Sequence record: OQ921725.1
Reading direction: 5' to 3' (one strand)
DNA length: 64,000 nucleotides
Of this stretch, positions 8,969 to 61,556 are shown in pieces. Below the pieces are notes generated by a model. It ran no database searches and was not told where the DNA came from. It saw nothing but the letters and a program-made list of their open reading frames with translations. A program made the translations under genes and the position numbers. Each line of letters begins with the position of its first letter. Within the stretch, counting starts at the first letter, position 1.

Positions 8969-9361
8969 ATGAAGCAGATAGTCAACGGACTGGCGACACG
9001 CGGCGAAGACTCCTGGCTGACGAGCACGCAGGGGCTGCCTGACGGCAAGCAGGCCCTGTCCATGGGGAAGAACTGGAAGCAGGCCCAGGCTCTCCTCCAG
9101 CAGGCGGCCGAACTGGCACTGAAGGCTCCGCCCGGATCGGTGACGGTCGATCTCAGGCTGGAGGATCCGGAACTTCAGCAACTGGTCGACGAGGTGCACC
9201 GCACCCGGGGCCTTCTGCGGGACGCCAAGTTCCACTACGACGCCGCCCTGGGGGCTGCGGCACGCGGACTCACGAAACGGGCGACCGTCAGGGACGTGGC
9301 GGCAATGCTGGGCTGCTCACACCAGCACGTGGCGAAGCTGGCGCAGAAGACCTCGCCCTGA
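8969..9361 (+). CDS. HicB-like antitoxin domain with C-terminal HTH
   Basis: ATRGEDSWLTSTQGLP...ALSMGKNWKQAQALLQQA (partial RNase H-like HicB pattern); ATVRDVAAMLGCSHQHVAKL HTH. Confidence 0.6.
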   Translation: MKQIVNGLATRGEDSWLTSTQGLPDGKQALSMGKNWKQAQALLQQAAELALKAPPGSVTVDLRLEDPELQQLVDEVHRTRGLLRDAKFHYDAALGAAARGLTKRATVRDVAAMLGCSHQHVAKLAQKTSP

Positions 9362-9538
9362 CCCGGCGGCGCGGCAGGGGCTCGCCCGACTCCATCCGTC
9401 TCTTGAGGGCGAGCCCGAAGTTCTGCCACAGCTCCCAGCACTTGCAGAACTGGTTGTGGCCCTGACGGTAGTGCCGGGACTTCAGTCGCATCTGCTTGCG
9501 ATAGCGCTTGTTCATCGCGCCCCTCACGTCCTTCCTGG

Positions 9539-10120
9539 GTGGAGCTGTACCATCTTCTCGTGACGACCATCGGCGAAATCATCTATGACGAGCTGCCCGC
9601 TTTCATGGAGCGGACCGGCAAGAAAACTCTCCGAATCCTCGAAGTCGGCGTTCTGCGGAATCTGGACGACGACCACCTGAAGGGTGATGGTCATTCGACC
9701 CTCGCCTTCGCCCGCCTCCTGAAGGAACACCCGGGAAGCGCGTACGTCGGCATCGACCTGGAGCCGCACGAGGCACGGCGTGCCGTGGACTCGGAGGGCC
9801 TGGGCCACTTCTGCGACTTCTACGCCGGGGACTCCGTGGCCACCATGGAGGAGCTGAAGATCGACGGCGAGAAGTTCGACGTGATCTACCTCGACGCCGA
9901 CAACGACGGCGCGGCCACCATGCGGGAGTACCTGCTGGCGCTCGACCTCGTCACCAGTCCGGGCCTGATCATGGGTGACGACATGAACACCGACCACCGC
10001 GAGGTCCGCAAGGGCCGGGTGCTCATTCCCTACCTGCGCGAATCCGGCGCCGACTTCAAGCTGCGCAAGCGGCACACCCCGTGGGACACCCGCGACATTC
10101 TCGTCCAGGAGATCTCGTGA
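9539..10120 (+). CDS. Class I SAM-dependent methyltransferase (Methyltransf_24-like)
   Basis: ILEVGV, YVGIDL, GDSV, FDVIYLDAD, GLIMGDD. Confidence 0.8.
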   Translation: MELYHLLVTTIGEIIYDELPAFMERTGKKTLRILEVGVLRNLDDDHLKGDGHSTLAFARLLKEHPGSAYVGIDLEPHEARRAVDSEGLGHFCDFYAGDSVATMEELKIDGEKFDVIYLDADNDGAATMREYLLALDLVTSPGLIMGDDMNTDHREVRKGRVLIPYLRESGADFKLRKRHTPWDTRDILVQEIS

Positions 10121-10422
10121 GCAAGGACATCGCTTCCGTCGGCCGCGCCGTGCATTACACCTCGCTGGGGTCCGCACCGCAGGACGGCGTCCAGCAGTAC
10201 CTCTCGAAGTGCCGGGCGGCCACCATCACCGAGGTCGTCGATCTGGCGGCGGGCATCGTGCACCTCACGGTCATGAACCCGGAGGGCTTCCAGTTCGCGA
10301 AGGACGTCGTCTTCGACGTCGAGCGACTGGCTCTGAACGGGGAGGCGACCCCGGGCACCTGGCACTGGCCGGAAAAGCCGGTGGCCCCGCTCGTGAGCGG
10401 GGCCGGACCGAAGGAGCTGTGA
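10117..10422 (+). CDS. Conserved phage hypothetical protein
   Basis: GTGA coupling; SVGRAVHY...AATITEV...GTWHWPE. Confidence 0.6.
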   Translation: MSKDIASVGRAVHYTSLGSAPQDGVQQYLSKCRAATITEVVDLAAGIVHLTVMNPEGFQFAKDVVFDVERLALNGEATPGTWHWPEKPVAPLVSGAGPKEL

Positions 10423-10537
10423 TGTGGGCGATGACGCGCTGGCGGTGCATCTGCGGGCGGCACCATGCGCCCTGGTGGCGCACCGTCCAGGCGCCGTCGT
10501 GCACGGCCGTGAAGCCGTGGGTGAAGCGGCCGGAGAT

Positions 10538-10762
10538 TCAGAAGGCCACGTAGAGGATCCGGACCCCGTCACCGGTCCGCTCGAAGTCCAGCTCCACCCC
10601 GCAGGGCAGCTCGACCATGAGCACGTTCATCGACCGGTGGACGGCCGAGGCCGGAACCGAGTCGGCGAACATCACCGGGATCTCGGACTCGATCCGGCCA
10701 CGGATCGCAGGGTCAGAATCCTCCACAGCCTGCCAGGCAGGTGCCATCCAGGTGACCCGCAC
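10538..10762 (-). CDS. Small protein with weak RelE/ParE-like pattern
   Basis: MRVTWMAPAWQAVEDSDPAIRGRIESEI...VRILYVAF. Confidence 0.4.
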   Translation of the reverse strand: MRVTWMAPAWQAVEDSDPAIRGRIESEIPVMFADSVPASAVHRSMNVLMVELPCGVELDFERTGDGVRILYVAF

Positions 10763-10765
10763 GGG

Positions 10766-11230
10766 TCAGTTGTCGTAAGCGGAGGGCACGCCGACGAACT
10801 GCTGCCGGACCCAGCCCTGGTACAGGTTGCCCCAGCCGCCGTTGCCCTTGGTGATCTGCTTGACGTAGATGAGCTTGGTGCCGTCGGCGGTGGTGGTCTT
10901 CCGGTCGAGGTACTGGAAGGTGTCACCCTCACCCATGCCGGAACCGAGGTCGCGACCGTTCTGGTCACGGAAGATCAGGCCGCCCGTGCCGGGCGCCGGA
11001 GCGTTCGCGTAGCGCTCGCCGCCGGACTCCTTCTTGATCGTGACGTCCGGGCACGTGGTGACCTTGGCGCGCTCCTTCTTGCCGGTCTGCGGGTTGGTCA
11101 CCATCTCGTAGGTGACCTTGGCCTCGGCGCCAGGGCCGCAGGTGGAGTCGGCGGCGGCGGTGCCCGCGAAGGCGAGAGAGCCGGTCAGGGCGACAGCGGC
11201 GGCACCGGCCGCGATGGTCTTCTTGTTCAT
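10766..11230 (-). CDS. Secreted protein with C-terminal SH3b-like domain
   Basis: Signal peptide MNKKTIAAGAAAVALTGSLAFAGTAAA; C-terminal GWVRQQFV. Confidence 0.65.
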   Translation of the reverse strand: MNKKTIAAGAAAVALTGSLAFAGTAAADSTCGPGAEAKVTYEMVTNPQTGKKERAKVTTCPDVTIKKESGGERYANAPAPGTGGLIFRDQNGRDLGSGMGEGDTFQYLDRKTTTADGTKLIYVKQITKGNGGWGNLYQGWVRQQFVGVPSAYDN

Positions 11231-11322
11231 GCTCTCGGGGTTCCTCTCCGAAGTGGGGGCTTGCTGTATCCATCAGACCACATGACCTAGGCCAAATTCA
11301 AGTTCCACGAAAGCGAGAAGTC

Positions 11323-11514
11323 ATGGATATCGCCCCGGTCGGCACGATCACGATTCCCCGAACCTGCGGAGACGTACCCTGCGGGCAGTGTGAGCCCTGT
11401 CGCAGGAGGGCGATGCTGAACATGGCATCGTACGCACTGCGGTCGGAAACAGAAGAAGGCGGCCCGAAGGCCGCCCTCTCTGAACTTCTCGAAGCTCTCG
11501 GACTGCGTGGCTAG
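11323..11514 (+). CDS. Small Cys-rich hypothetical protein
   Basis: CGDVPCGQCEPC. Confidence 0.4.
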   Translation: MDIAPVGTITIPRTCGDVPCGQCEPCRRRAMLNMASYALRSETEEGGPKAALSELLEALGLRG

Positions 11515-11882
11515 CAGCGCGTTCCTTCCTCGGAGAGGGACCGGTTCAGGATCTCCTCGACCTCCAGGCGATCCAGATCACTGAACGCCGGGGCCCGGAG
11601 GATGACCTTCTCGCACCCCTCACGGCTGGTCCATCCCGTGCGCATGAGGGCAGCGAGACCCGTCAGGGCCTCGGCGATGTCGGTGGCAGTGGACTCCTTG
11701 CGGCGCAGCACGCCCATCACCCGGCGCGCGTACGCCTGGGCGTGGCCGTGACGGACCGATCCGCGCGGGCAGACGTCATGCGTGACGGTCCAGCCGGATG
11801 CGTGCGACCCCTGGACGTTGCCCTCTCCGGCTGGCACCCGTCCCTGGCAGACGCCACATGGTTTCGGGTACATATTCCTCAT
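11511..11882 (-). CDS. Hypothetical protein with N-terminal CxxC...HxxC
   Basis: PKPCGVCQGRV...VTHDVCP. Confidence 0.55.
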   Translation of the reverse strand: MRNMYPKPCGVCQGRVPAGEGNVQGSHASGWTVTHDVCPRGSVRHGHAQAYARRVMGVLRRKESTATDIAEALTGLAALMRTGWTSREGCEKVILRAPAFSDLDRLEVEEILNRSLSEEGTRC

Positions 11883-11951
11883 GTTTTTGAGGATGACACA
11901 CCGTGCCGCAAAAGGAAAGTCCGATTGGGGGCGGGAAGTTCAGGGAACTCG

Positions 11952-12152
11952 CTACTCTTCGCGCACTCGCGCTTCCACGGCTGCGGCGGCCAAGTTCCAT
12001 GCCTGCTTCAGCCGTTCGTTCTGCTCTTCCCAAGTGGGCATCTTGGTGCCCGAGAACGTGGTCCAGCCGACGCTCTCTCCGTACGCCTCGTATGCCACAC
12101 GTCCCAGTTCAGCAGCCACCCTTGCCTCCTCATGAGGAAGGGACCCGGCCAA
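11952..12152 (-). CDS. Small hypothetical protein
   Basis: LGRVAYEAY...MPTWEEQ...AWNLAA. Confidence 0.55.
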   Translation of the reverse strand: MAGSLPHEEARVAAELGRVAYEAYGESVGWTTFSGTKMPTWEEQNERLKQAWNLAAAAVEARVREE

Positions 12153-12165
12153 TCGGCCGGGTCCC
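12140..12165. terminator. Perfect 11-bp hairpin
   Basis: GGGACCCGGCC-AATC-GGCCGGGTCCC. Confidence 0.55.
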
Positions 12166-12251
12166 CGTGAGTCTCAGCCCCAGGAAGTGGAGTCCGCGCT
12201 GCCCAGTGCTGCGCGGGTGGGGCATCACAAGGTTACCGAAAATGTTCCCCG

Positions 12252-14660
12252 GTGAGGAATGCTGTACGCGTCGCAGCAGAAAGGAACGGCATGTCCTCAC
12301 ACGAAGAGCGGATCGCCGCCGAGGCGGAGGCATACTTCCGCAATCAGGCGCGACAGGCCGGATGGGTCAACGATCCCGTGGGGTGGGCCAGGGATGTTCT
12401 CGGCGTCCATCTGTGGAGCAAGCAGCAGGAAATCTGCTCCTCCCTCATCCGGAACAAGCGCACGGTAGTCGCCTCCTGTCACGGCACCGGCAAGGCGCTC
12501 GGGCTGGACGAGCTGGTCCACACCCCGTCGGGCCCCGTGAGGATGGGGGAGATAACCGAGGGCATGAAGGTGCTGGGCTCCGACGGCTCGCCGGTCGAAG
12601 TGGTCGCTGTCACGGGCGAACACAAGGCCGAGAGTTACGTCGTCCGTCTGGAAAGGGGTGGCGCCCACGAGGAGATCGTCGCCTCGGCCGATCACGCCTG
12701 GCCGGTGCTCGACCTTCAGGGCCTCGCCGACATCCAGCTCAAGTCCGACCGGGCGGGCGTACCGGTGGAGACCGGTTTGTGGATGCACAAGGCGAAGACC
12801 ATGACCACCAAGCAGATCGCCAAGCTGCGGCCCGGCACGGTCGTTGTTCCCGGCCGGTCTCCGGAGATCCTTCCCCGGGGTCTGACGTGGTCGGCAGATG
12901 AGGCGATGCAAGCCCTGCTCGCCGAACGCGGCGGACTTGACCCTCACGGACGTACCGCGCTGCTCTGGAAGACGCGCCAGGGCGAGCCGGAGGAGATCTC
13001 CTCGGTGCGGGCCAGGATGCGCGAGGCGGGCGTCCAGACGATCTACCGGCGCGAGCGGCAGTACGGCATCACCATGCGGCACCTGGCGCTGATGGGATCT
13101 CACGCCCCAACCCTTCTGCCGGATGCCAATCAGCGGGCTATCGCCCTGTCGCACCTCCTGCTGACCCAGGGCTCCTGGGGTGACGACGGCTGGCGGATCA
13201 CGTCCGTGAAGCCGGTCGGCGAGCGGGACGTGCAGTGCATCCAGGTGGACTCGCCCGACCACCTCTACCTCTGCGGCGAGCGCGGAATCCCCACCCACAA
13301 CTCGATGATCGCTTCGGTGCTCGCGTGCTGGTGGGTGTCGACGAAGCCACCGGGCCAGGCGATCGTCGTCTCAACGGCGCCGACCTACGCCCAGGTCAAC
13401 AAGATCCTCTGGGAGGAGATCCGCAAGCACCACTCGAACGCCTCGCGCGGCGAATACCCGATGCCGGGCCGCGTGACCCAGGCCGATGAGTGGAAGCTGG
13501 GCGACGGGCAGATCGTCGGCTTCGGCCGGAAGCCCGCCAAGGGCGACCGCCACTCCTTCCACGGTATCCACCGCCGGTACGTGCTGGCCCTGCTCGACGA
13601 GGCGTGCGGTATCCCCGAGGAGATCTGGACCGGTGTCGAGGCCATCACCACGAACATCGGCTGCCGGATCCTGGCCATCGGAAACCCCGACGACCGGAAC
13701 ACGGACTTCGGCAAGAACTTCATGGAGCAGAAGACCGCGCACCTGTGGAACCGGATCTCGATCCCGGCGTCGAGCACGCCGAACTTCACGGGCGAGCCGG
13801 TGCCGAAGCTGCTGAACGAAGTCCTCGTCTCGCGCGACTGGGTGCAGGAGCGTCTGGACGACTGGGGCGAGAAGGACCCGCGCTACATCGCGAAGGTGCT
13901 GGCCAAGTTCCCCGAGCAGAGCATGTCGTCGCTGTTCGCCCCCTCCCTGGTGGCCGACGCGGTCGACGAGTCCCCGACCCCGTCGCTGTACTCGGTGCTG
14001 CGCCTGGGTGTCGACGTCGCGCGTTTCGGCTCCGACAAGACGGTGGTCGCCTCGTACTCCGGCGTGACCGCGCAGATCGAGGAGTCCTGGTCCGGGACTG
14101 ACACGGTGTCCTCGGCCCACAAGGTTCTCCAGATCGCCGAGCGCCTGAAGGAAGAGCGCAAGGCGCCCTGGGTGGAGATCCGGGTGGACGCCGTCGGCCT
14201 GGGTGCCGGTGTCGTCGACACCCTGAACGCCCGAGCGATGCTTCTGCCGGACCCCTGGTTCACGGTCTACGAGATGCACGGATCGGCCGCGCCCCCGGTG
14301 AACGTCGGTGGCTCGGTCTACGGCTTCTACAACGCGAGGGCGTACTGGTTCGAGCAGGTCCGGCAGAAGATGCGCAACGGCTCGGTGAAGTTCATCGACC
14401 CTGACGAGCTGATCACCGACGACCTGAAGATGGTCTTCTACTCGATCAAGAACGGGCGCCTGCTCATCGCCTCCAAGGAGGACATGCGCAAGGAGTACGG
14501 CAAGTCCCCCGACTACGCCGACGCCATCGCCTACGCGGTCGCCCCGGTGGCCGAGGGTCTTCAGCAGGGAGACGTGCTGACCGAGACGGCTGAGAACATG
14601 GCCGGTTCGCTGGTCGAGGAGAACGAGTACTTCGCCGAGGAGATGATCTCGCCCTACTGA
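12252..14660 (+). CDS. terL: Terminase large subunit containing an intein
   Basis: Walker A SCHGTGK|S split by the intein; Walker B ALLDEACG; IGNP; nuclease motif LGVDVARFGSD; SPDYADA. Probable start is the ATG at 12291. Confidence 0.95.
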   Translation: MRNAVRVAAERNGMSSHEERIAAEAEAYFRNQARQAGWVNDPVGWARDVLGVHLWSKQQEICSSLIRNKRTVVASCHGTGKALGLDELVHTPSGPVRMGEITEGMKVLGSDGSPVEVVAVTGEHKAESYVVRLERGGAHEEIVASADHAWPVLDLQGLADIQLKSDRAGVPVETGLWMHKAKTMTTKQIAKLRPGTVVVPGRSPEILPRGLTWSADEAMQALLAERGGLDPHGRTALLWKTRQGEPEEISSVRARMREAGVQTIYRRERQYGITMRHLALMGSHAPTLLPDANQRAIALSHLLLTQGSWGDDGWRITSVKPVGERDVQCIQVDSPDHLYLCGERGIPTHNSMIASVLACWWVSTKPPGQAIVVSTAPTYAQVNKILWEEIRKHHSNASRGEYPMPGRVTQADEWKLGDGQIVGFGRKPAKGDRHSFHGIHRRYVLALLDEACGIPEEIWTGVEAITTNIGCRILAIGNPDDRNTDFGKNFMEQKTAHLWNRISIPASSTPNFTGEPVPKLLNEVLVSRDWVQERLDDWGEKDPRYIAKVLAKFPEQSMSSLFAPSLVADAVDESPTPSLYSVLRLGVDVARFGSDKTVVASYSGVTAQIEESWSGTDTVSSAHKVLQIAERLKEERKAPWVEIRVDAVGLGAGVVDTLNARAMLLPDPWFTVYEMHGSAAPPVNVGGSVYGFYNARAYWFEQVRQKMRNGSVKFIDPDELITDDLKMVFYSIKNGRLLIASKEDMRKEYGKSPDYADAIAYAVAPVAEGLQQGDVLTETAENMAGSLVEENEYFAEEMISPY
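12495..13301 (+). mobile_element. Class 3 intein (269 aa) with degenerate endonuclease region
   Basis: Starts ALGLDELVHTPSG; block B SADHAW; block F VQCIQVD; ends IPTHN followed by S. Confidence 0.9.
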
Positions 14661-14723
14661 CGGAATCCTCAAAGTGAGCTGTAGTTCCAGGAGCACCATG
14701 TGCACGGAACTCAAGGAGGACGA

Positions 14724-15146
14724 GTGGACATCCAGACCTGCCCGCGCCGGATGCGGGAGATGGGCCCCTGGGAGAGGTCGAGCGGCCAGGACGAGTGGCG
14801 CGACGAGCCCCGCCGGGGCGGCGAGGCGGTGCCGTACTGCTCATTCTGCGGATCTCTGCACCCGGGCAAGTTCCTGGAACTGATCGCCGAGGGGTGGGAG
14901 GTGGGGCCGACCGACAAGAACTACAAGGCGTACCTGCATCCGCCGCGCGGCAAGGACGGCGAGCAGTCCCATGAGGTCCGGGCGAAGTTCTATTACCAGC
15001 ACCTGTCGGGCGCCCAGCAGCAGCAGTTCATCGACCTCTACAACCGCCAGGTCATGCAGATCTCCTACCCGGGGCACTTCTACGTGCTGCCGTTCTTCAT
15101 GCGGATCGCACCGGAGGATCCGGTACCCGGCAACGGATCGGTGTGA
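14724..15146 (+). CDS. Conserved phage hypothetical protein
   Basis: GGAGG RBS and GTG start; CSFCGSLHP. Confidence 0.6.
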   Translation: MDIQTCPRRMREMGPWERSSGQDEWRDEPRRGGEAVPYCSFCGSLHPGKFLELIAEGWEVGPTDKNYKAYLHPPRGKDGEQSHEVRAKFYYQHLSGAQQQQFIDLYNRQVMQISYPGHFYVLPFFMRIAPEDPVPGNGSV

Positions 15147-15394
15147 TGTACGACCACGCCGAAGCGGCCCGCCGCAGGATCATCGCCAGGTCTCGGGATG
15201 CCGGACCGGTCGGCAGGAAGTACGTGGAACTCGCGAACCTCCTTATGACCGGCCCGGATTCGCCACTCAGGACCAGCGCCCTGAAGAAGCTGGCCGACTC
15301 CTGCGACAATGCAATCGCTCTGGTGGAAAAGGTCCGCCAATCCCCGGGAAACCCCTCCGTCAGACGCAGGTCGCCAGGTCAATCGAGCAGTTAA
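15143..15394 (+). CDS. Hypothetical protein
   Basis: GTGA coupling to the upstream gene. Confidence 0.45.
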   Translation: MMYDHAEAARRRIIARSRDAGPVGRKYVELANLLMTGPDSPLRTSALKKLADSCDNAIALVEKVRQSPGNPSVRRRSPGQSSS

Positions 15395-15403
15395 GGTGAT
15401 CGC

Positions 15404-50447: not shown

Positions 50448-50459
50448 GCTTCCTCCGGG

Positions 50460-52866: not shown

Positions 52867-54078
52867 TCAGAGGTTCTTGGCGCCCGCGAACTCGTCGAGG
52901 CCGCCGCCCTCGCCGTCCTCGTCCTTGGCCACCTCGGTCCACTGCGTGCCCAGCCAGACGGCGGTGACCGTCTTGCCGGTGCGCAGGAGGACGTCCACGA
53001 ACACGCCCGGCGTCTTGTCCTGCGCGATGGCGCCGACCGTGCCCCAGGTGATCTCGCCGGAGACCGTCTCGCCGTTGCGCATCTCGACCTCGACCTTGCG
53101 CTCCGGCACCGGCAGGAACTTGGTCTTCAGGTAGTCGGTGGTCTGCGCGTAGTCCTCCATCAGCGGCGCGGAGTTCTCGCCCCGGTCGGCGATGGCGTAG
53201 ACCCGGTCGTCGACCTTGACCAGCAGCTTCTCGTTGCCCTCCCAGACCTGGCCGGAGCCGTCGTTGAGGATGTAGCCGCTGCCGTCCTGCGGGGAGAAGA
53301 CGGTGACCGGGGCGCCGGTCTCGGTGTCGACCAGCACGTTGATCGGCTGGTTGTTGCCGTCGAGGCGCGGGCGGCTCTTGGTCTTCGTGGACAGCGTGAT
53401 GCACGCCATCACGACCTTGCCCTCGATCCGCTTGGCGATCTCCGGCATCGTCTTGAGGCTGACCTTCTCGCCGGGCTGCGTGGCGCTGGCGGCGACGCGC
53501 AGGGTGCGGCCGTCCTCGTTCTTGTAGCCCTTGCGGCCGGAGCGCTGCTCCTTGAAGAAGGCCGTCTTGATCGTGAGCGCGGGGCTCTCGATCTCGTACG
53601 GGTACCGGCGCTGGCCGAACTCCGGGGCGACGTGGTTGGCCTCGCAGATGAAGTACGGCAGCTCCATCTCGGTGACGACCTCGGTGGCGCCGGTCTGAAG
53701 GGCGGCCTCGACCTGGTCGAACGGCACGTAGACGCGCTTCTTGCCGTCCTCGCCGACCTTCACCGCGACGCAGACCTTGGAGGAGAGGCGCGGGGTGTGC
53801 TTCTCCTTGAACTCGGCCACCGAGATCCGGATCGGGACCCACATCTTGTCCTTGAGGCCCACGTCGAGCGGGTTGACGTAGGTGTTGCCCGCCTCGTAGA
53901 CGCGCACCTCCTCGTCGGACTCCTCCTCCTCCAGCTCCATCTCGGCGCCCGCGAAGAGGTCGTCCAGCTCGGCGTCCAGGTCGACACCCGCGAGGACGTC
54001 GCCCTCGGCCGGGGCCGCGTCGTTCACGTCGGCACCCTCGGGCTGGTTGAACGGGTCGAACTCGGTGTTGTCGCTCAT
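52867..54078 (-). CDS. Acidic, highly expressed replication-module protein (SSB-like candidate)
   Basis: Very biased codons; acidic N- and C-termini; lies between the RecT-like and primase genes. Confidence 0.5.
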   Translation of the reverse strand: MSDNTEFDPFNQPEGADVNDAAPAEGDVLAGVDLDAELDDLFAGAEMELEEEESDEEVRVYEAGNTYVNPLDVGLKDKMWVPIRISVAEFKEKHTPRLSSKVCVAVKVGEDGKKRVYVPFDQVEAALQTGATEVVTEMELPYFICEANHVAPEFGQRRYPYEIESPALTIKTAFFKEQRSGRKGYKNEDGRTLRVAASATQPGEKVSLKTMPEIAKRIEGKVVMACITLSTKTKSRPRLDGNNQPINVLVDTETGAPVTVFSPQDGSGYILNDGSGQVWEGNEKLLVKVDDRVYAIADRGENSAPLMEDYAQTTDYLKTKFLPVPERKVEVEMRNGETVSGEITWGTVGAIAQDKTPGVFVDVLLRTGKTVTAVWLGTQWTEVAKDEDGEGGGLDEFAGAKNL

Positions 54079-54109
54079 GGTGTCCTTGTCCTTGTCCTTG
54101 TGGTCCGCG

Positions 54110-55267
54110 TCAGGCACGGAGGGAGTTGACGATGGATTCCAGGTGGAGGCTCAGCGGCGCCGAGGCGTCGCCATGGCTCACCACCTCGTCTCCCTTGCCC
54201 GCTTCGCGCGCCGCCTCCTGGACGGCGTAGATGCGGGAGATCTTGTCGTCGGTGGACAGGCTGTCATCCCCGACGGTGCGCTCGGCCCAGTCGGCGAGCT
54301 GCTGCGGCGAGCCCTTCTCGGCCGCCTTGCGGGCGGCGTCGAGCATGGCCTTCTGCTTCCGGCTGCCGCCCTTGGTGACGTCGATGACCTCACCGTTGAT
54401 CGGCACGCCCTCCTCGGTCACCTCGGCCCCCAGCTCTTCGGGAGTGTAGGCGGCGGAGGCCATGGCCAGGTGGTCGTGGTCGTCCTCGGAGAGGGACAGG
54501 CCCATCTCGCCGAGGATGTTCTTGACGCCGAGGATCACGTCGATCGCACCGTCTCGCACCACACCCGACTTGGCCCGGCTCTTCAGCATCTCGGGGCCGT
54601 AGTTCTGCCAGGTGCTCTTCGAGTTGAGGCCGATCTGGTTGGCTCGCGCCATCGACCACACCGACTCGAACCGGACCAGCTTGGCCAGATCGAAGTTCGT
54701 GGTGCCGATGGAGTCGCGCAGCTCGTCGAAGTTGTACTGCCCGTGCAGTGCGGCGAGCTGCTTACGCAGGGCCGCGATCTCCTCGGGAGACGCCTTCTCA
54801 TCGAACTCGGCAAGGGCCCGGAGGTCTTCGATCCTCTCCAGGATCTGGCCGCGCTGCATCTTGTACAGGCGGTCCATGTCCTCCAGCCGGGCCAGCTTCT
54901 GGCGCCGCTCCTCCTCGCGCATCTTCTGGAAGCGCTGGAGGTCTTCGTCGGACGTCTTGCGCACCAGCACGGCGGTCGCCTTCACGGCGTTGCCCTCGAT
55001 GTGCACGGTGTGCCCGGCGGCGACGGCGAGCGCCTGCATCAGGTGGGCGCTCATGCCCGCCTTCAGGCGGCCCTTGCCGTCGGGGAAGACGAAGATGTGC
55101 TGGAAGGAGGACATCGGGTCGATGCCCAGGGCGGCGCCGAAGCGCATCATGTACTCGGCGGAGGCCGCATCACCTGCGATGTGCTCCGGCATCAGCTTCG
55201 ACTTCGACAGCCGCGCTGCTTCGGCGGGATCCACCTCGCCGGTCGTACGACGGACAAGCTCAGTCAT
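54110..55267 (-). CDS. RecT-like ssDNA annealing protein with an internal coiled-coil insertion
   Basis: GAALGIDPMSSFQHIFV; WQNYGPEMLKSRAKS; YTPEELG. Confidence 0.7.
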   Translation of the reverse strand: MTELVRRTTGEVDPAEAARLSKSKLMPEHIAGDAASAEYMMRFGAALGIDPMSSFQHIFVFPDGKGRLKAGMSAHLMQALAVAAGHTVHIEGNAVKATAVLVRKTSDEDLQRFQKMREEERRQKLARLEDMDRLYKMQRGQILERIEDLRALAEFDEKASPEEIAALRKQLAALHGQYNFDELRDSIGTTNFDLAKLVRFESVWSMARANQIGLNSKSTWQNYGPEMLKSRAKSGVVRDGAIDVILGVKNILGEMGLSLSEDDHDHLAMASAAYTPEELGAEVTEEGVPINGEVIDVTKGGSRKQKAMLDAARKAAEKGSPQQLADWAERTVGDDSLSTDDKISRIYAVQEAAREAGKGDEVVSHGDASAPLSLHLESIVNSLRA

Positions 55268-55350
55268 GCGTGCCTCGTTTTCAGTGCTTGTTCTTGTGTC
55301 GTTTTTGGTTCGCGTGGCGTCGTGTTCTTGTGTCTCCACTCTACCACTAT

Positions 55351-57186
55351 TTAGCCGCGCAGCCTAGGCCGAATCGAGCAGGGGAAGCACTCGGGGTGCG
55401 GAGCCAGCTCGTTGATCTTGCCCGTGCGCACGAGAGATGCCAGGTGAGCAGCCCGGTTGATGACACCCTGGGCCACGTCGGGCCGGTAGGCGCACGAGGC
55501 CACCCAGATGTCACTCACGTTGTTCGAGTCCCGGGGGATGAACGCGAGGACAGCGTAGTCCGCTTCCCGCCCCATCGCCCGCAGTCCGTACAGGTACAGC
55601 ATCGTCTGGCCCATGTACTCCGACGGCACGCCGCCCGAGTGCTCCTCGGACCGGGACATCAGCAGAACCATCCGGCCCAGATCCGCCTCGGTCAGCAGCC
55701 CGGCCCGGTCCATCGCCTTGAGCTTGGTCAGGTCTTCGCGCTCCGGGGCGGTGAGCCCGTGGACGTAAGCGCCGGGACCGGCCTGCGTCTGGTACTTCTT
55801 CAGCTTCTTCAGGTCGGTTGTGTTGTGGGTCACGACCATCGACTTGGTGCACAGGTACGTACTGTCGGGTGAGTCGACCTTGATGCACTGCGTCGGAACA
55901 GTCTCGACAGGCTCCACGGACTGAATCAGTCGCTGACTGCCTCGAACCTCAGAAGTCACGTCTACGCGATCAGCCTTGACGGAGGAGAGGAACGGATTGA
56001 GGCCACCTACTGGCGTGAAGGAAACCATGTAGGCAGTGACCTCCTTTCCAAACCCCTTGCGTTGCACGGCATTGAACGCGGCACGCTGCCCCAGACCGAC
56101 CAGCAGTTCGTACACCGACTCGGCCAAGGCCCGGTCGGTGACCTCGAAGACGGCCTTCCGGCGCGTCCTGTTCCAGGTCCCATCGGTGTCCATCAGACCC
56201 CGCAGCAGGTCGAGACGCTGCTGTCGCGACGCGCGAAGGTAGGCGGCCGGAACGAACTTTCGGTCGGCCATGCCGCACTTCTTGAGGAGCCCGATCAGGC
56301 CGCGCACGGTGCGTGTCGGAGAGCCCTTTTCGGCCGTACCGGCGTCGGCCGGTCCGACGTCGAATCCACGCTCCTGGATGTGCTGGAACATCTCGTCATC
56401 GGGCTTGCTGATGCGGCCCGTGCCCACTGACCCGTCACCGAGCCAGCAACCGAGGACGTATGGGTCGATCGGGAGCTGCGCGTCGGTCAGTTCCAGCGGC
56501 TGGGCGTTGGCGATCCGGTACCGGCTCTGGCCGTTACTGAGCTTGAGAGTGTTTTTGATCTCTTCGGTGCCCAGCACCTTGGAGATCGCACGGGCTCCAC
56601 TGCCGGAGATGACGGCCCACAGGTGCTCGTTGTCGGCGACCACCGTCTGACCGTCGTCGAACGTGATGCGGTAACAGGGGCGATGGTGGATCTCCGACTT
56701 GCCGAGCACCTTGCACGGCTTGCCATCTGATCCGATGAGCAGGTCGCCCACGCGAACGTCGCCCATGGTCGTCCATCCGGTCGGCGTCGGGAGGGGTGTA
56801 TCCAGCGCCAGCCCCTTCCAGTCGACCAGGGTCTTCTTGCGTGGCAGGAAGACGTCCACGTGGCCCCGCACCAGACCGATGCCCGGGATCTCCGCGACAT
56901 CGACGGTGATCTCCTGCTCGGCGTGGGCGTACACGCTGGGCAGGTCGCGCTCCAGCTTCTCGTGCACCGCAGTGCCGAGCCATGCCTTGAGGCTGAACCC
57001 CCGCTCGGTGTGGGAGCCCATGCCCAGTGAGGCGGCGATCTTCCGGGCCACGCAGATGTCGCACTTGTCGGCGAGGTCACTGGGCCCGGGAGCCCGTTGC
57101 TTGTCGCGCGCCGAGGGCCGGGTGATGGTGGCTACCGCGATTCCCTCGACGAAAGTGCGAATATTTTCCTGATCTTCTGCTGTCAT
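55351..57186 (-). CDS. Cas4-like PD-(D/E)xK exonuclease containing an intein
   Basis: GPSDLADKC, GTAVHE, GHVD, VDWK|TT, QTMLY, C-terminal CFPC. Confidence 0.85.
   Translation of the reverse strand: MTAEDQENIRTFVEGIAVATITRPSARDKQRAPGPSDLADKCDICVARKIAASLGMGSHTERGFSLKAWLGTAVHEKLERDLPSVYAHAEQEITVDVAEIPGIGLVRGHVDVFLPRKKTLVDWKGLALDTPLPTPTGWTTMGDVRVGDLLIGSDGKPCKVLGKSEIHHRPCYRITFDDGQTVVADNEHLWAVISGSGARAISKVLGTEEIKNTLKLSNGQSRYRIANAQPLELTDAQLPIDPYVLGCWLGDGSVGTGRISKPDDEMFQHIQERGFDVGPADAGTAEKGSPTRTVRGLIGLLKKCGMADRKFVPAAYLRASRQQRLDLLRGLMDTDGTWNRTRRKAVFEVTDRALAESVYELLVGLGQRAAFNAVQRKGFGKEVTAYMVSFTPVGGLNPFLSSVKADRVDVTSEVRGSQRLIQSVEPVETVPTQCIKVDSPDSTYLCTKSMVVTHNTTDLKKLKKYQTQAGPGAYVHGLTAPEREDLTKLKAMDRAGLLTEADLGRMVLLMSRSEEHSGGVPSEYMGQTMLYLYGLRAMGREADYAVLAFIPRDSNNVSDIWVASCAYRPDVAQGVINRAAHLASLVRTGKINELAPHPECFPCSIRPRLRG
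55822..56814 (-). mobile_element. Class 3 intein (331 aa) with LAGLIDADG homing endonuclease
   Basis: GLALDTPLPTPTGW; ADNEHLW; LGCWLGDG and LLRGLMDTDG; TQCIKVD; VVTHN followed by T. Confidence 0.92.
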
Positions 57187-57195
57187 GTCGCAACC

Positions 57196-57903
57196 CTACA
57201 CCGGGGCACTGACACTGGCGGCCAGCTCGCGGCCAGGACCCAGCAGGTCGTCCCACGAGCCGTCCGTTCCGGCCTCCCGGTAGAGCTTCAGCCTGGCCAA
57301 CGACTCGGCCGACCCGGCGTACCTCGTGATCCGCGCGGGCTTCTCGTGCCACAGGTGGTACAGAGGTGCCCGTCCTCGCCAGGAAGGTCCGTAGATCCCG
57401 TTCAGGGCCACGGCCCACGCCTCGTCCTCCTGGCCCCAGCCGACGAACCGTGGGTCGAGAGGGCAGTTCAGGTAGACCTCGCGCCGCAGCACCGTGATTC
57501 CGCCGCCCTCGAAACCCTTGTAGGGCCGCTGATCGAGCCAGCGGAGCTGCCCGGTGAAGGAACCGGGGTTCGCCCCTTCGAAGATGTGGTTCGTGGCCAC
57601 CTGGCTCATCCGGTACACCTTCAGGTGCGGGACGGCCCAGGCGGCGCCCTGCTGCACGGCGCGTACGGCCTGCTTCAGGCCCGGGGTGATGGAGTCCGCG
57701 TCGGCGATGACCACGATCGGCTCGGTGCAGGAAGCCAGTGCGGTGGCTACGGCCTTTGCCTTGCACCATGGCTGTTCACTGAACCCGACCTGGATCCTGG
57801 GACTTTCCAGCTCGCTGGCATACCAGGACTTCACGTACTCCAGCGCCTGCTTGCGCCACGGCGTTTCGTTCCCGTAAGGGATCAGGACGGCGATGTCGTT
57901 CAT
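57196..57903 (-). CDS. GT-A glycosyltransferase (GT2/GT7C-like)
   Basis: IAVLIPY; VIADADS (DxD); GGITV...FVGWGQED. Confidence 0.85.
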   Translation of the reverse strand: MNDIAVLIPYGNETPWRKQALEYVKSWYASELESPRIQVGFSEQPWCKAKAVATALASCTEPIVVIADADSITPGLKQAVRAVQQGAAWAVPHLKVYRMSQVATNHIFEGANPGSFTGQLRWLDQRPYKGFEGGGITVLRREVYLNCPLDPRFVGWGQEDEAWAVALNGIYGPSWRGRAPLYHLWHEKPARITRYAGSAESLARLKLYREAGTDGSWDDLLGPGRELAASVSAPV

Positions 57904-57919
57904 GGCCGTATCCTGGCAC

Positions 57920-57960
57920 GGAAACGGGCCACCGCTCAGGGGACGGCGGGGCCCGTTTCC
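57920..57960 (-). terminator. Terminator-like hairpin
   Basis: GGAAACGGGCC...GGCCCGTTTCC. Confidence 0.6.
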
Positions 57961-57973
57961 TGCATCCGGAGGA

Positions 57974-58681
57974 TCAGCCCTCGAAGCTGAAGTCCTCGTC
58001 GTCGTCGCCGGAGGGGCGGGAGGCCAGGTACTTCGCCTTGTCCTCGTCGGTCGCCCGGCGGACGGTCAGCGTCGGCCCGTTGTCCTTGAGGCACGCGTCC
58101 AGCTTGTCGGGCTCGTGCTCGAAGAGCTTGCGCGCCATGGTGGCATCGGGCTTCGGCAGGAGGATCCGCTTGTAGTCTTCGGCCGAGAGGTTGCGCTTGG
58201 CGGTGGGGGCGTCGAACTTCGTGCCCGAGGTGTAGACCAGGGCCACGCCGTCCTGGATGTCGATGCCCAGGTTGCCGCCCCGGCGGTACTTCGCGACGGC
58301 CTTGGCGCGCTCGACCAGGTCGGCGGCCTCCTTCTTGATGCGCTCCTGCTCCAGGATGAACACGGCCAGCGCCGCGTCGTCGAGGTTGTCGATGTCGTCG
58401 GGGTTCATGCCGCTCCAGTTGTTCTCCGGCGCCTTGACGGCGTGGGGGTGGTCCTCCGGGAGGGCCGCCAGCGGCACGTAGCCGTTGTCCTGCGGCTGGC
58501 CGTCGGAGGCCAAGTACTCCGAGTGGATGAGCGAGGCGCGCACGGTGCGGCGGCGACCCAGGCTGCCGTCGCTGACCGTGGCGATGTTCGCCTCGCGGCT
58601 GTCCTTGTCGAGTACGGCAACGACCTTCTTCGTGCGGACGTTGAAGTAGAGCTGGTTGCCGACGATGTTGTCCAGGCTCAC
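57974..58681 (-). CDS. Highly expressed hypothetical protein
   Basis: Strong codon bias; own upstream promoter and hairpin. Confidence 0.65.
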   Translation of the reverse strand: MSLDNIVGNQLYFNVRTKKVVAVLDKDSREANIATVSDGSLGRRRTVRASLIHSEYLASDGQPQDNGYVPLAALPEDHPHAVKAPENNWSGMNPDDIDNLDDAALAVFILEQERIKKEAADLVERAKAVAKYRRGGNLGIDIQDGVALVYTSGTKFDAPTAKRNLSAEDYKRILLPKPDATMARKLFEHEPDKLDACLKDNGPTLTVRRATDEDKAKYLASRPSGDDDEDFSFEG

Positions 58682-58696
58682 GTTTTTCCCCTTCCG

Positions 58697-58757
58697 AAGC
58701 CCCGTGTTCCGGGGCTTGTGAGTACTACTCTACCAGGGATCTGCGAGATTTTCGCAA
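58697..58757 (-). promoter_or_regulatory. Putative sigma70-type leftward promoter with operator-like palindrome and leader hairpin
   Basis: Minus strand TTGCGA-19 nt-TAGAGT; TGCGA-N5-TCGCA at 58742-58756; AAGCCCCG-TGTTC-CGGGGCTT hairpin at 58697-58717. Confidence 0.45.
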
Positions 58758-58780
58758 GTCTCTGTTCTGAGAATCGAGGA

Positions 58781-59278
58781 TCAGCCTTCGTCCTCGTTTT
58801 CGGGCATCTCGATGCTGAAGGAAACCCTCCACCCCAGAATCCGCAGCGCCGCCTGGATCGTCGAGATCGGGTGATCCGCGATGTGCCGGGCGAGGCTGTC
58901 GGCCGAGGGGTTGTCGGGCTCCTCCGTGTTCAGTTCGAACGTACGCCATGCCTCTGACATCGCCCGCTGGGCGCCGTACCGCTCGGACTTCTCCAGGGCG
59001 TCGGCGTAGTGCAGGTACGAGGCGTTCAGGGCGGCCGTCAGGCGCCGCTTGGCCTCGCCTTCGGTCATGTCCCCGGGCAGCCCGGAGAAGGCCGCGTCGT
59101 AGGCCGCGTCGAGCGCGCCCGGGACCGCCACGGCCCGCATGCCGACCGGGACGACTGCGGCCAGCGGACGACCGTCCTCGGTCAGGTAGAAGATCTCGCC
59201 GTTCTCGTGTGCCCGCCTGGCCAGCTCCTCGGTACGGTCGCAGCATCCGCGCACCGGTACGTCCTGCTCCTGCTTCAT
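58781..59278 (-). CDS. Protein with Phd/YefM antitoxin-like N-terminus
   Basis: ELARRAHENGEIFYLTEDGRPLAAVVPV. Confidence 0.55.
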   Translation of the reverse strand: MKQEQDVPVRGCCDRTEELARRAHENGEIFYLTEDGRPLAAVVPVGMRAVAVPGALDAAYDAAFSGLPGDMTEGEAKRRLTAALNASYLHYADALEKSERYGAQRAMSEAWRTFELNTEEPDNPSADSLARHIADHPISTIQAALRILGWRVSFSIEMPENEDEG

Positions 59279-59292
59279 GGCCTTCCCCTCTC

Positions 59293-59838
59293 CTACAGCC
59301 CGGCGGCCCACGCCGCGAGCGTCTTGAAATCCCCGTCGAGCAGCCCGGTCCTCGGGCTGACGTAGTGCAGCAGGGTGGAGCCCTGGTGGTTGACGGCGAC
59401 GTGCTCGCGGTCGCCGTCGTGGATCTCGTCGTCGATCCAGGCGAAGGGCCGCCCATCGGCCCACACGACGATGTGCGGCGTCTTCCAGAAGACGCCGTCG
59501 GTGCGGCCGGACTTCTCCGGGTGCGGATCGTTGGCCCAGAAGTCCACGTACTCCAGCTCGGGGAGCCCGATCAGCGGGCCGATCCACTCGTTGGCCTCGG
59601 GGCCCCACATGCTGGCCCACACCAGATCGAAGTACTCGGCCAGCTTCAGCAGCTCGACACCGTGCGACTCGTTGAGCCAGACGCGCAGCGGCTTGCCGTA
59701 GACGTTCGTCCAGTGCTCGCCGTTCTGGTCGGTGGGGTTGAGGCGGTGCGTGCTGTACCCCTCGGGGCGGCGGTGCGGCTTCGCGGCGTGCGGGTTCAGC
59801 GGCCCGTCCACGTCGATCAGCAACAGCGGCTTGGTCAT
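59293..59838 (-). CDS. HAD-superfamily phosphatase (HAD_SAK_2-like)
   Basis: LLLIDVDGPLN; LVWASMW; FAWIDDE. Confidence 0.85.
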   Translation of the reverse strand: MTKPLLLIDVDGPLNPHAAKPHRRPEGYSTHRLNPTDQNGEHWTNVYGKPLRVWLNESHGVELLKLAEYFDLVWASMWGPEANEWIGPLIGLPELEYVDFWANDPHPEKSGRTDGVFWKTPHIVVWADGRPFAWIDDEIHDGDREHVAVNHQGSTLLHYVSPRTGLLDGDFKTLAAWAAGL

Positions 59839-59859
59839 CTCTTCTCCAGTCCGGGCGGA

Positions 59860-59883
59860 CGGGCCCCGCCTCAGCGGGGCCCG
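59860..59883 (-). terminator. Hairpin
   Basis: CGGGCCCCGC-CTCA-GCGGGGCCCG. Confidence 0.5.
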
Positions 59884-59924
59884 GGAACGCCACCTTCTCG
59901 TATGACGCGCCAACGGCGCGGATC

Positions 59925-60269
59925 TCACTGCGGGGGTCGAATCCCCAGTCGCTCGTAGACCTCTTCCATGGGAGGCGCCAGCTTCAGCTCCGGCCATTCC
60001 AGCCGTTCGCCACCCTCGTGCTCGAACGGCGGCGGGTCACCCAGGTCGATCCTGGTCATGAAGTGCTTGCCCTCCAGGGACATCACGTCCGTGGTACCGG
60101 CAGCCTGAAGGAATGGTTCGGCGTGCGTGAGCACCGCGCGCCGGAGGGACCATGAGGCAACGACCCAGACCTTGCGGGGGTCGTCGTCTTCGCAGTCCAT
60201 CCGGTCGTGATCCTCTTCGGCCTTCAGGATGTACACAGGGCTCGGCAGGAAGCGGTGCCCCTCGGCCAT
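59925..60269 (-). CDS. Hypothetical protein
   Basis: TGATG coupling. Confidence 0.55.
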   Translation of the reverse strand: MAEGHRFLPSPVYILKAEEDHDRMDCEDDDPRKVWVVASWSLRRAVLTHAEPFLQAAGTTDVMSLEGKHFMTRIDLGDPPPFEHEGGERLEWPELKLAPPMEEVYERLGIRPPQ

Positions 60270-60895
60270 CAGTCCTCCAGGCGCTCGACGCCGGAGGCCA
60301 CCCGTACGGCCCTGGAATGGGTCAGCAGGAAGTCGTGGACCTCCTTGTCCCAGCGGGCGTCGTAGAGGGCGTGGTGGGCCTTCTCGACGTACTTCTCGGG
60401 CAGCCGCAGGCCGTTGGGGAGGTGGTCGTCCTCGACGCCCGCCAGCATCTCCAGGGAGGCCAGGTCGAGGAACGGGTGCTTCGGCACCGAGGGCGGCATC
60501 ACGCCGAACCAGTCGTTGCCGAAGAGGTTGTGGATCCGCTGCATGTCCTGGGTGCAGTGATCCGCGACGAAGCCGATCCGGTACTTGTACTTCTGCTTGT
60601 CGGTGAGGCCGTCGAAGTAGGAGCCGACCGCCGACTGGATGGCCGTGTAGGGCACCACGTACGGGCTGCTGCGGTCGAGCGAACCGTCGGCCCGCAACGG
60701 CAGCTTGGACCAGATGTGGTCGCGCCGGAACGGGTCGGAGCAGAAGTCCTCGCGGTCCGCGTCGGCGTTCACCAGGTACAGCCAGTCGTGGTCGGCCTGG
60801 AGGGCGGTGGAGACGAGTCCGCCGGGCGTGTGGTTGTCGGGGGTGAACTCGGAGTCGCCGTAGACGAACTCGAAGCCGGGATAGGTGGCCTTCAT
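60269..60895 (-). CDS. DEDD 3'-5' exoribonuclease (Rv2179c/DUF5051-like)
   Basis: VYGDSEF...LVSTAL...DHIWSKLP...HHALYDARW. Confidence 0.7.
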   Translation of the reverse strand: MKATYPGFEFVYGDSEFTPDNHTPGGLVSTALQADHDWLYLVNADADREDFCSDPFRRDHIWSKLPLRADGSLDRSSPYVVPYTAIQSAVGSYFDGLTDKQKYKYRIGFVADHCTQDMQRIHNLFGNDWFGVMPPSVPKHPFLDLASLEMLAGVEDDHLPNGLRLPEKYVEKAHHALYDARWDKEVHDFLLTHSRAVRVASGVERLED

Positions 60896-60909
60896 CTTCT
60901 CGCTTTCCG

Positions 60910-61161
60910 CTATCGGTTGATCTTGCCGCCGCAGAACATGCAGCTCGGGTCGATGTTGTCGATCGTGATCTCGAAGACGCAGCGCTCGATCGGGGACTCT
61001 GGGCAGATGTGATGGGAGTCCAGGAGGGTTGCGTCGGGGCACCCGAGAAGAGCTGCCAGCTCGTCGAGGAAGTCGCGTTCGATCTGGCCACGCCGCTGGG
61101 AGAGGGCGAAGATCTGCTCGTTGATCCGGCCGATCTCCGCTCTCTTGCCCAGCAGTGACAC
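60910..61161 (-). CDS. Small hypothetical protein
   Basis: Coiled coil plus HICPESP...CMFCG. Confidence 0.5.
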   Translation of the reverse strand: MSLLGKRAEIGRINEQIFALSQRRGQIERDFLDELAALLGCPDATLLDSHHICPESPIERCVFEITIDNIDPSCMFCGGKINR

Positions 61162-61187
61162 CAGGGACTTGCCCTGCCACTCGGATC

Positions 61188-61556
61188 TCACGTGACGCTC
61201 GGGTCCTGTACGTAGGCACGGGCCGCCGCAAGGACGTCCCCGCCGTACCCCAGACCGATCTCCGTGGTGGGGCACCCGTCCGGGTAGTCGCCCCCGTTGT
61301 GGTTCTCCAGGTGCGGATTCATGCCGATCATCCAGGCGCGGGCGATGTCGACCCCTTCCGCCTTGCGCAGGATCTGGAACACCTCATACCCGGTGCGCAG
61401 CTTGGCCTCGTCCTCGACGTTCGGGGGCGCAACCAGCCAGCGCTTCAGCGGCGCCGCACCCGGCATGCCGCACATCTCACCGAGCAGGGACGGCCCCAGC
61501 CAGTCGGTCAGGGACCGGATCACCTGGTGGATCTCCGGGACATTCTCCTGCGTCAT
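61188..61556 (-). CDS. Xre/MbcA/ParS-like antitoxin-domain protein
   Basis: N-terminal HTH-like helices; EGVDIARAWMIGMNPHL...VLAAARAYV. Confidence 0.6.
   Translation of the reverse strand: MTQENVPEIHQVIRSLTDWLGPSLLGEMCGMPGAAPLKRWLVAPPNVEDEAKLRTGYEVFQILRKAEGVDIARAWMIGMNPHLENHNGGDYPDGCPTTEIGLGYGGDVLAAARAYVQDPSVT

Follow-up and report, generated by a model that had tools for sequence, protein, structure and literature searches.

A probable orphan homologue of RES-partnered MbcA-type antitoxins among scattered antitoxin-like genes of Streptomyces phage Frankenweenie

In the MbcTA toxin-antitoxin (TA) pair, the C-terminus of the antitoxin MbcA (Rv1990c; family COG5642, PF09722) sterically blocks the active-site cleft of the toxin MbcT (PMC6436930). 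An orphan homologue of MbcA was reported in Mycobacterium phage Ibhubesi (gp52) by Freire et al. (2019), who raised an anti-defence role for it as a speculation (PMC6436930); in the literature searched, the only later mention of it was in a review. Phage orphan antitoxins of the DarG type, together with NADAR proteins, have experimental precedent as counter-defence against DarTG, where an antitoxin-type gene carried without its toxin neutralises the TA defence of the host (PMC11825919, PMC11481870, PMC13309987). A further phage antitoxin, the 65-aa gp90 of Adephagia, was validated as a small HicB-like protein and is followed directly downstream by the gene of its HicA toxin, gp91 (PMC11373665). 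Here, a window of 64,000 nucleotides (nt), which corresponds at 100% identity to bases 1-64000 of the 200,048-bp genome of Streptomyces phage Frankenweenie (OQ921725.1; host S. scabiei RL-34), was analysed with regard to five small genes. The original prediction, made on the letters alone, had read them as two HicB-like genes (gp20 and gp37), a Phd/YefM-like gene (gp82), an Xre/MbcA/ParS-like gene (gp87) and possibly a ribbon-helix-helix (RHH) gene (gp17), without cognate toxins beside them and together forming a multi-family decoy set against host TA modules. The five intervals coincide exactly with deposited coding sequences, all of them annotated as hypothetical proteins (Table 1). The analyses separated one well-founded call, gp87, from four weaker ones: with a probability of roughly 0.85, and on the basis of sequence comparison, gp87 is an orphan member of the MbcA-type antitoxin family that is partnered with RES toxins.

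The gp87 family comprised 34 clusters, and its distant Streptomyces members are named 'XRE family transcriptional regulator' by NCBI. A 27-sequence profile of the family, searched against the PDB, had MbcA (6FKG chain C) as its top match (E 0.009), and after the addition of bacterial relatives the resulting 41-sequence profile matched MbcA (6fkg_C) and no other entry, with an E value of 2.2e-4 over 73 aligned residues. The two proteins are similar in length (115 aa in MbcA and 122 aa in gp87) and probably in layout, with an apparent helix-turn-helix (HTH)-like region of gp87 followed by a C-terminal domain. The alignment begins at MbcA residue 33 and takes in only the end of the HTH region and the C-terminal domain of toxin-binding type, and it is this C-terminal domain, not the HTH, that is the best-conserved block of the gp87 family. 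An invariant core with the pattern [RC]AWM[IV]GMN is common to gp87 and its Streptomyces relatives. Compared to the cellular proteins, the phage clade has an insertion of about 12 residues, hence the approximate bounds of the aligned domain, and it also has a conserved C-terminal tail of its own. Further inspection revealed that some short relatives have a deletion of the stretch that aligns with the HTH region of gp87 yet retain the C-terminal domain (the single contig inspected was phage-like), and that in three other viral contigs of high guanine-cytosine (GC) content (IMG/VR, 47-156 kb) the MbcA-type domain stands at the end of open reading frames (ORFs) of about 190-350 residues, where it appears to be fused to N-terminal parts without known identity. 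Both arrangements indicate that selection in phages acts on the MbcA-type domain.

The genomic context of the cellular relatives gives this assignment its decisive support. Three of them were located directly downstream of a RES-domain (PF08808) gene. The context was then scanned in 80 bacterial loci from species-representative genomes, nearly all of Streptomyces, with a RES hidden Markov model (HMM) built from the RES proteins of the inspected loci. An adjacent RES ORF on the same strand was present in 73 of the 80 loci, or 73 of the 77 with sufficient flanking sequence, given that three of the seven loci lacking RES were contigs too short to be assessed. RES was upstream of the MbcA-like gene in 69 loci, with a variable spacer (median of 748 nt to the start of the match), and four loci from metagenome-assembled genomes (Acidimicrobiaceae and one proteobacterium) had the canonical order, in which the antitoxin is followed immediately by RES. 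A gene encoding a WD40 protein of about 780 aa was kept upstream of RES in 65 of the 80 loci, and at the three loci inspected in two independent Streptomyces genomes an AAA_16 NTPase gene preceded it. In Streptomyces the module reads, in order, AAA_16 NTPase and WD40 genes, the gene of a RES protein of about 230 aa, a spacer of about 0.5-0.75 kb and the MbcA-like gene; the conserved module was seen in at least 65 species-level genomes. One RES/MbcA-like locus resides on a 498-kb Streptomyces plasmid, and the flanks downstream of the module differ between loci. Taken together, the module looks like a mobile conflict system of the signal transduction ATPase with numerous domains (STAND) type with RES as its effector. 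A hidden conserved ORF in the spacer between the RES and MbcA-like genes was also considered and was rejected, as no candidate was conserved in more than 8 of 64 loci.

Frankenweenie belongs to a cluster of seven isolates with genomes of 184-200 kb; its relatives Kradal, EhyElimayoE, Quantum, Satis, JustBecause and Kela show about 84-86% DNA identity to it. gp87 was found in all seven, and a tblastn search among phage records recovered only these seven Streptomyces phages, while 23 metagenomic clusters carried it at 53% identity or more. Comparison with JustBecause placed gp87 ninth among the most divergent of 75 shared genes (60% identity, against a median of 80%). The gene is located in the replication module, among DNA-metabolism genes. 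The RES adjacency that holds in cells fails in phages: the six-frame ORFs of the 200-kb Frankenweenie genome yielded no RES-like ORF in HMM and tblastn searches (best HMM E value 3.5), and no RES gene occurred within 3 kb in nine viral contigs bearing gp87 relatives, so that gp87 is an orphan of the family rather than part of a TA module. It was probably captured from Streptomyces. The Xre/MbcA/ParS-like reading of gp87 was thus borne out by the profile match to MbcA and by the RES adjacency of its bacterial relatives.

The gene that occupies the usual position of a toxin, gp86, overlaps gp87 by 4 nt. No match to it was obtained in Pfam, PHROG, PADLOC or the PDB, and no database relatives were found beyond the phage group of Frankenweenie. 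JustBecause shares the order gp87-gp86, and so does a distant relative as judged only by gene order and size. The C-terminal part of gp86 is rich in cysteine, with four residues in two pairs, which suggests a small zinc ribbon. As a universal partner of gp87 it was rejected, because in another phage lineage the gp87-like gene is followed by a gene that has no relationship to gp86.

The similarity to MbcA suggests how gp87 would act. It is most likely made during infection, when it would bind a host RES-domain toxin that consumes NAD+ and occlude the active-site cleft of this toxin in the way that MbcA does with MbcT; a host RES toxin so blocked could not stop the infection. We infer this binding and neutralisation, and with them an antiphage role of the host RES loci, and consider the odds that gp87 is a direct-binding inhibitor of host RES toxins to be about even. 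Compared to MbcTA, gp87 has no RES partner in the phage genome, and its Streptomyces relatives have an upstream RES gene, a long spacer and WD40 and NTPase genes in place of a compact operon. The gene shares with Ibhubesi gp52 its status as an orphan MbcA-type gene in an actinophage, and with it the same anti-defence logic, although the two are not close, as the tblastn search shows, and the host genera differ. The resemblance to the orphan antitoxins of DarTG lies in a phage gene of antitoxin type that lacks its toxin; however, those proteins work as enzymes and undo a modification (type IV logic), whereas gp87 would bind directly (type II logic), and the latter is harder to transfer between toxins because a specific interface is needed.

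Several results weigh against this interpretation of gp87 and of its host target. gp87 itself does not reach the Pfam model PF09722, which only one of its 27 relatives reached, and marginally, and it had no match among the Pfam HTH models. The upstream position of RES in Streptomyces, with its variable spacer, is atypical for a type II TA operon, and because the RES arrangement is not a compact operon, the antitoxin role of the cellular MbcA-like protein is itself putative. The scan returned no RES/MbcA-like locus from S. scabiei, S. lividans or S. griseofuscus, the species to which the recorded hosts (strains RL-34, JI 1326 and ATCC 23916) belong, and in the literature searched no demonstration was found of RES systems acting as phage defences. 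In addition, gp87 appears to retain an HTH-like region and lies in the replication module, which would also suit a purely regulatory role.

Table 1. Position and assignment of the genes and domains considered in the Frankenweenie genome.
Feature	Position (nt)	Strand	Assignment
gp87, 122 aa	61188..61556	-	Probable orphan homologue of Xre/MbcA/ParS-type antitoxins that partner RES toxins
gp87, MbcA-aligning part, about residues 34-118	61203..61457 (approximate)	-	HMMER alignment to MbcA residues 33-109
gp86, 93 aa	60910..61191	-	'Toxin position' downstream of gp87, 4-nt overlap; no toxin signature
gp20, 130 aa	8969..9361	+	β-β-β-α-β 'HicB-like' domain (about 8969-9166), long helix (about 9167-9271), C-terminal HTH (about 9275-9346); accessory gene
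gp37, 69 aa	21777..21986	-	Single β-β-β-α-β domain; 'HicB-like' by fold class only
gp36, 142 aa	21356..21784	-	Downstream of gp37, 8-nt overlap; idea of a HicA-type partner not supported
gp82, 165 aa	58781..59278	-	Phd/YefM-like N-terminal half-domain (about 59141-59266) and conserved C-terminal domain; replication module
gp83	59293..59838	-	Weak HAD-domain match
gp17, 76 aa	7728..7958	-	Proposed RHH protein; accessory, on the strand opposite to its neighbours
gp15, 87 aa	7328..7591	+	Weak partial match to PF04973
gp79, 611 aa	55351..57186	-	Annotated 'Cas4 exonuclease and intron'
gp133	85064..85606		'SpoT-like' protein with only an HD hydrolase domain
gp194/gp195	123497..124119		Annotated RelE-like toxin (gp194) and overlapping upstream gene (gp195, 106 aa)
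gp287	163782..164243	-	Annotated 'ADP-ribosyltransferase'; DarG-like macrodomain

Direct scans of gp17, gp20, gp37, gp82 and gp87 gave no significant match in Pfam and NCBIfam and no match at all in PADLOC, and the sole direct profile match among the five proteins was that of gp20 to PHROG 8245. The claim that no cognate toxin is adjacent was confirmed by Pfam, PHROG and PADLOC analyses of the neighbours of the candidates, in which gp18, gp19, gp36, gp38, gp39, gp81, gp83, gp84, gp86 and gp88 yielded no toxin by Pfam and PHROG. Elsewhere in the genome there were no RES-like or HicA-like ORFs, but a RelE/ParE-like gene, gp194, lies outside the window.

The match of gp20 to PHROG 8245, 'HicB-like antitoxin', extended over the full length of the protein (E 3.8e-9). 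Its AlphaFold2 model, with a predicted local distance difference test score (pLDDT) of 92.8, comprises strands at residues 3-11, 16-20 and 30-33, a helix at 36-50 and a strand at 58-64, and this β-β-β-α-β domain is followed by a 35-residue helix and a C-terminal HTH at residues 103-126; HTH_23 was matched in 15 of 26 gp20 relatives. The gp37 model (pLDDT 85.1) is a bare β-β-β-α-β unit with the same topology as the N-terminal domain of gp20. gp37 and the gp20 N-terminal domain resemble HicB antitoxins in their comparable size and topology, and a C-terminal DNA-binding domain (RHH or HTH) is present in gp20 and absent from gp37, which in this respect is similar to the validated Adephagia gp90. 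Many HicB proteins carry a DNA-binding C-terminus, as gp20 does. In the viral fold library BFVD, gp20 had five matches at E <= 1e-3, two of which are named 'HicB-like antitoxin' (Gordonia phage Skog, E 2.4e-4; Mycobacterium phage Nibb, E 7e-4, root mean square deviation 2.0 Å).

The remaining comparisons weigh against a HicB assignment. Neither gp20 nor gp37 had a Foldseek match in the PDB at E <= 1e-3, and no HicB chain was present among the top 50 PDB matches of either, where the best, which were weak, were RNase H domains and double-stranded RNA-binding domains (dsRBDs). The HicB models of Pfam and NCBIfam were not matched by gp20, gp37 or their relatives, and the two family profiles retrieved from the PDB no antitoxin and no solved HicB; the top PDB match of the gp20 profile, a designed 'Rop' helical protein, was judged to be a spurious coiled-coil similarity. 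Only four real homologues of gp37 were found among 1.8 billion representatives, after three further matches had been judged spurious, being short matches inside very long proteins made of many stretches. The gp37 and gp20 families aligned in register (colinear) by hhalign, although not significantly. In the alignments to Adephagia gp90, the helix-strand element was in register, with a non-significant probability of 12% for the gp37 family and 3% for the gp20 family.

Moreover, the difference from HicB antitoxins lies in the lack of a HicA gene beside gp20 or gp37 or elsewhere in the Frankenweenie genome. The six-frame ORFs of the 200-kb genome gave only noise in a search for ORFs similar to the Adephagia HicA gp91, and among the flanking genes gp19 and gp36 had no HicA match in Pfam and PHROG (nor, for gp36, in PADLOC), gp21 being unscanned and annotated as an O-methyltransferase. 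For gp20, then, the HicB-like proposal stood as regards PHROG 8245, the fold and the names in BFVD, but not in Pfam, NCBIfam or the top 50 PDB folds, while for gp37 only the topology of the model agreed with it and nothing was significant by sequence or fold search. 'HicB-like' is in both cases a fold class and a community label, not a demonstrated family membership. Both proteins may have HicA-type toxins as targets, or gp20 may be no more than a regulator that binds DNA; we regard an anti-HicA role as doubtful.

The two genes also differ in their distribution. Among 50,697 phage records gp20 occurs in Frankenweenie alone, and it is missing from the six sequenced relatives; its homologues were found in 33 metagenomic clusters, several of them on contigs of 186-206 kb. 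The slot of gp20, between the DNA-binding protein gp18 and the O-methyltransferase, was the same in both metagenomic clusters examined and is empty in JustBecause. Some of the metagenomic homologues (197-205 aa in total) have an additional conserved C-terminal extension of about 70 residues that is not present in Frankenweenie gp20. gp37, on the other hand, is present in all seven isolates, with 51% identity to its JustBecause homologue, and belongs with gp87 among the fastest-diverging shared genes. JustBecause lacks the gene downstream of it, gp36, and the operon there ends with the gp37 homologue. gp36 had no Pfam or PADLOC match and no similarity to the Adephagia HicA gp91. Several PHROGs of unknown function were matched by its residues 20-77, as was a dNMP-kinase PHROG at its C-terminal end, with E values down to 4.6e-11; this segment is a small, widely shuffled phage domain.

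For gp82, no Pfam match was obtained with the protein itself, while nine of 27 relatives matched PF02604, with a best E value of about 1e-5. Three relatives were scanned singly, and their matches reached about 25 bits over model positions 3-42 of 74, compared to a gathering score of 29.8 bits. The N-terminal ~40 residues of the gp82 relatives thus correspond to the first half of the Phd/YefM model, and the toxin-binding C-terminus is replaced in gp82 by a conserved domain of about 110 residues without known relatives, which is the best-conserved part of the family. The family profile, this C-terminal domain included, had no match in the PDB. Phd/YefM proteins dimerise and bind their operators through the N-terminal domain, whereas they hold the toxin through the C-terminal segment. 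Since gp82 keeps only the N-terminal part, what it retains is not the toxin-neutralising part. The proposed Phd/YefM-like N-terminus was therefore recovered weakly and at the family level only, as a half domain below threshold.

gp82 is present in all seven isolates with 81% identity to JustBecause, which is at the genome average, and is syntenic in the replication module of the isolates and of metagenomic relatives, where it stands between the genes for a HAD-like protein and for an unknown protein. Its neighbours gp81 and gp83 are not toxins according to Pfam and PHROG, and no Doc, YoeB, RelE or VapC gene lies next to it. A relationship to gp195, the partner of the RelE-like gp194, was rejected, the two being unrelated. 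Most likely gp82 is a DNA-binding or dimeric protein of the replication module in which the N-terminal Phd/YefM fold is reused; it probably does not serve as an antitoxin decoy, and an anti-toxin role appears highly improbable. The adjacent gp83 matched the HAD domain of the 'Swiss Army Knife' RNA-repair proteins weakly and below the cut-off (PF18143, E 2.5e-4).

gp17, the proposed RHH protein, had no match in Pfam, NCBIfam, PHROG, PADLOC or the PDB sequences, and its RHH identity was not confirmed. Among phage records it was found in Frankenweenie only, and a single metagenomic homologue, with 54% identity, occupies the same position. A co-occurrence of gp17 with gp20 was considered and rejected, as it was inconsistent in the metagenomic contigs.

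Beyond the window, gp287 is annotated as an 'ADP-ribosyltransferase', yet it matched the Pfam Macro model (7.7e-11) and the DarG model of PADLOC (E 2.2e-40, model positions 4-135 of 329). By these profile matches it is a DarG-like macrodomain that was mis-annotated, and the annotation is corrected here. No DarT was found beside it, the six flanking genes being without a Pfam match, and gp287 is probably an orphan DarG-like counter-defence enzyme. The general idea that Frankenweenie carries antitoxin-type genes is reasonable mainly because of gp87 and gp287. The annotated RelE-like toxin gp194 showed a weak match to ParE_toxin (E 0.004), and the overlapping upstream gp195 showed none; they are probably a type II TA pair of the phage itself. 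gp194 lies 64 kb from gp82 and has its own partner gene. gp133, the 'SpoT-like' protein, has only an HD hydrolase domain (HD_4, 1.7e-8) and may be a small alarmone hydrolase. Small alarmone hydrolases are an enzyme type known as the antitoxin of alarmone-synthetase toxins.

Other explanations of these genes can be weighed on the same results. If gp87, and gp20 with it, were ordinary phage transcription regulators, the HTH would be what is selected and the antitoxin ancestry a relic without toxin binding. The alignment of gp87 to MbcA does extend into the last part of the HTH region, the HTH at the C-terminus of gp20 is clear, gp87 lies among DNA-metabolism genes of the replication module, and many phage repressors are Xre-like (PMC6436930). 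However, the C-terminal domain is more conserved than the HTH in the gp87 family, it is kept in the short relatives from which the HTH-aligning stretch is deleted and appears to be fused to larger proteins in other viral contigs, and the fast divergence of gp87 suits a conflict gene more than a core regulator; we consider this explanation unlikely. Still further from the data is the idea that the phage has TA pairs of its own here (gp87-gp86 and gp37-gp36), in which these genes supply the antitoxins and the overlapping downstream genes encode toxins that escaped recognition. The overlaps and the antitoxin-then-toxin order agree with it, as do the conservation of gp87-gp86 in JustBecause and the distant relative, the RelE-like pair gp195-gp194 of Frankenweenie itself, and the complete HicB-then-HicA pairs that occur in actinophages (PMC11373665). 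But neither gp86 nor gp36 matched a toxin in Pfam, PHROG, PADLOC or the PDB, gp36 is missing from JustBecause although gp37 is retained, another phage lineage has an unrelated gene after its gp87-like gene, and overlaps of 4-8 nt are the norm across these operons. Such pairs are very improbable, and an orphan MbcA-type protein is the preferred reading of gp87.

The opposite extreme, that all four or five genes form one decoy set that neutralises or represses the HicA, Doc/VapC/RelE and RES modules of the host, gains from gp87 as a true orphan antitoxin homologue, from the orphan DarG-like macrodomain and the HD-domain SpoT-like hydrolase elsewhere in the genome, from the lack of adjacent cognate toxins and from the fast divergence of gp37 and gp87; orphan antitoxins are in addition proven counter-defence for DarTG (PMC11825919). 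It loses on the other members, as gp82, a replication-module gene with an average rate of evolution, shows only a sub-threshold N-terminal half of PF02604, neither HicB models nor solved HicB structures are matched by gp20 and gp37, and gp17 has no family match. The five genes are not clustered and differ in module, strand and phyletic pattern, gp17 and gp20 being accessory insertions and gp37, gp82 and gp87 being cluster-wide. HTH, RHH, Phd-like and β-β-β-α-β are generic small folds, of which several among about 300 unnamed genes are unremarkable. Because their conservation and location differ, the five genes are independent and not one system; of the proposed set, only the orphan antitoxin homology of gp87 was upheld, and a joint decoy function is improbable. 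A less sweeping alternative concerns gp20 and gp37 only, which could be small nucleic-acid-binding proteins of an RNase H-like or dsRBD-like kind with no relation to TA systems, 'HicB-like' being a habit of annotation. Their best PDB folds, all non-significant, point in this direction, as do the lack of HicB profile matches, the origin of the BFVD names as annotators' labels, and the fact that small proteins of this kind are common, and mostly unnamed, across actinophages. Nevertheless, gp20 has the full HicB-type architecture of an N-terminal domain and a DNA-binding C-terminus, its match to PHROG 8245 is significant, and the validated Adephagia antitoxin is a 65-aa protein of this class to which gp37 aligns in register, if weakly. 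We consider this alternative rather unlikely, though it deserves to be kept in mind for both genes.

If gp87 blocks host RES toxins, it would be a natural orphan antitoxin of type II, or binding type, used by a phage. It would also give a first concrete handle on the question of an antiphage role for NAD+-depleting RES modules in Streptomyces, and would flag the NTPase-WD40-RES-MbcA-like locus as a candidate immune system. In its widest form, the proposal is that the phage cluster carries several independently acquired counter-defence genes of antitoxin type (gp87, gp287 and possibly gp20 and gp37), and that the Streptomyces module is a hitherto uncharacterised antiphage system of the STAND type, with a RES effector that gp87 disarms; taken as a whole, this is speculative and we judge it unlikely. 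Phage orphan antitoxins were already known for DarTG, and an anti-defence role for a phage MbcA homologue had been put forward in 2019, which makes the advance an incremental one; what appears to be new is the link to the conserved Streptomyces module.

Two further genes of the window were noted. gp79 is annotated as 'Cas4 exonuclease and intron', and the Cas4-family gene of JustBecause encodes only 280 aa; gp79 seems to hold a large insertion (an intron, intein or homing element). gp15 showed a weak partial match to PF04973, the nicotinamide mononucleotide (NMN)/nicotinamide riboside transporter family (E 1.3e-4, positions 8-68 of 175); it is far too short for a full transporter, and its JustBecause homologue is annotated as PnuC-like, which offers a possible link to NAD+.

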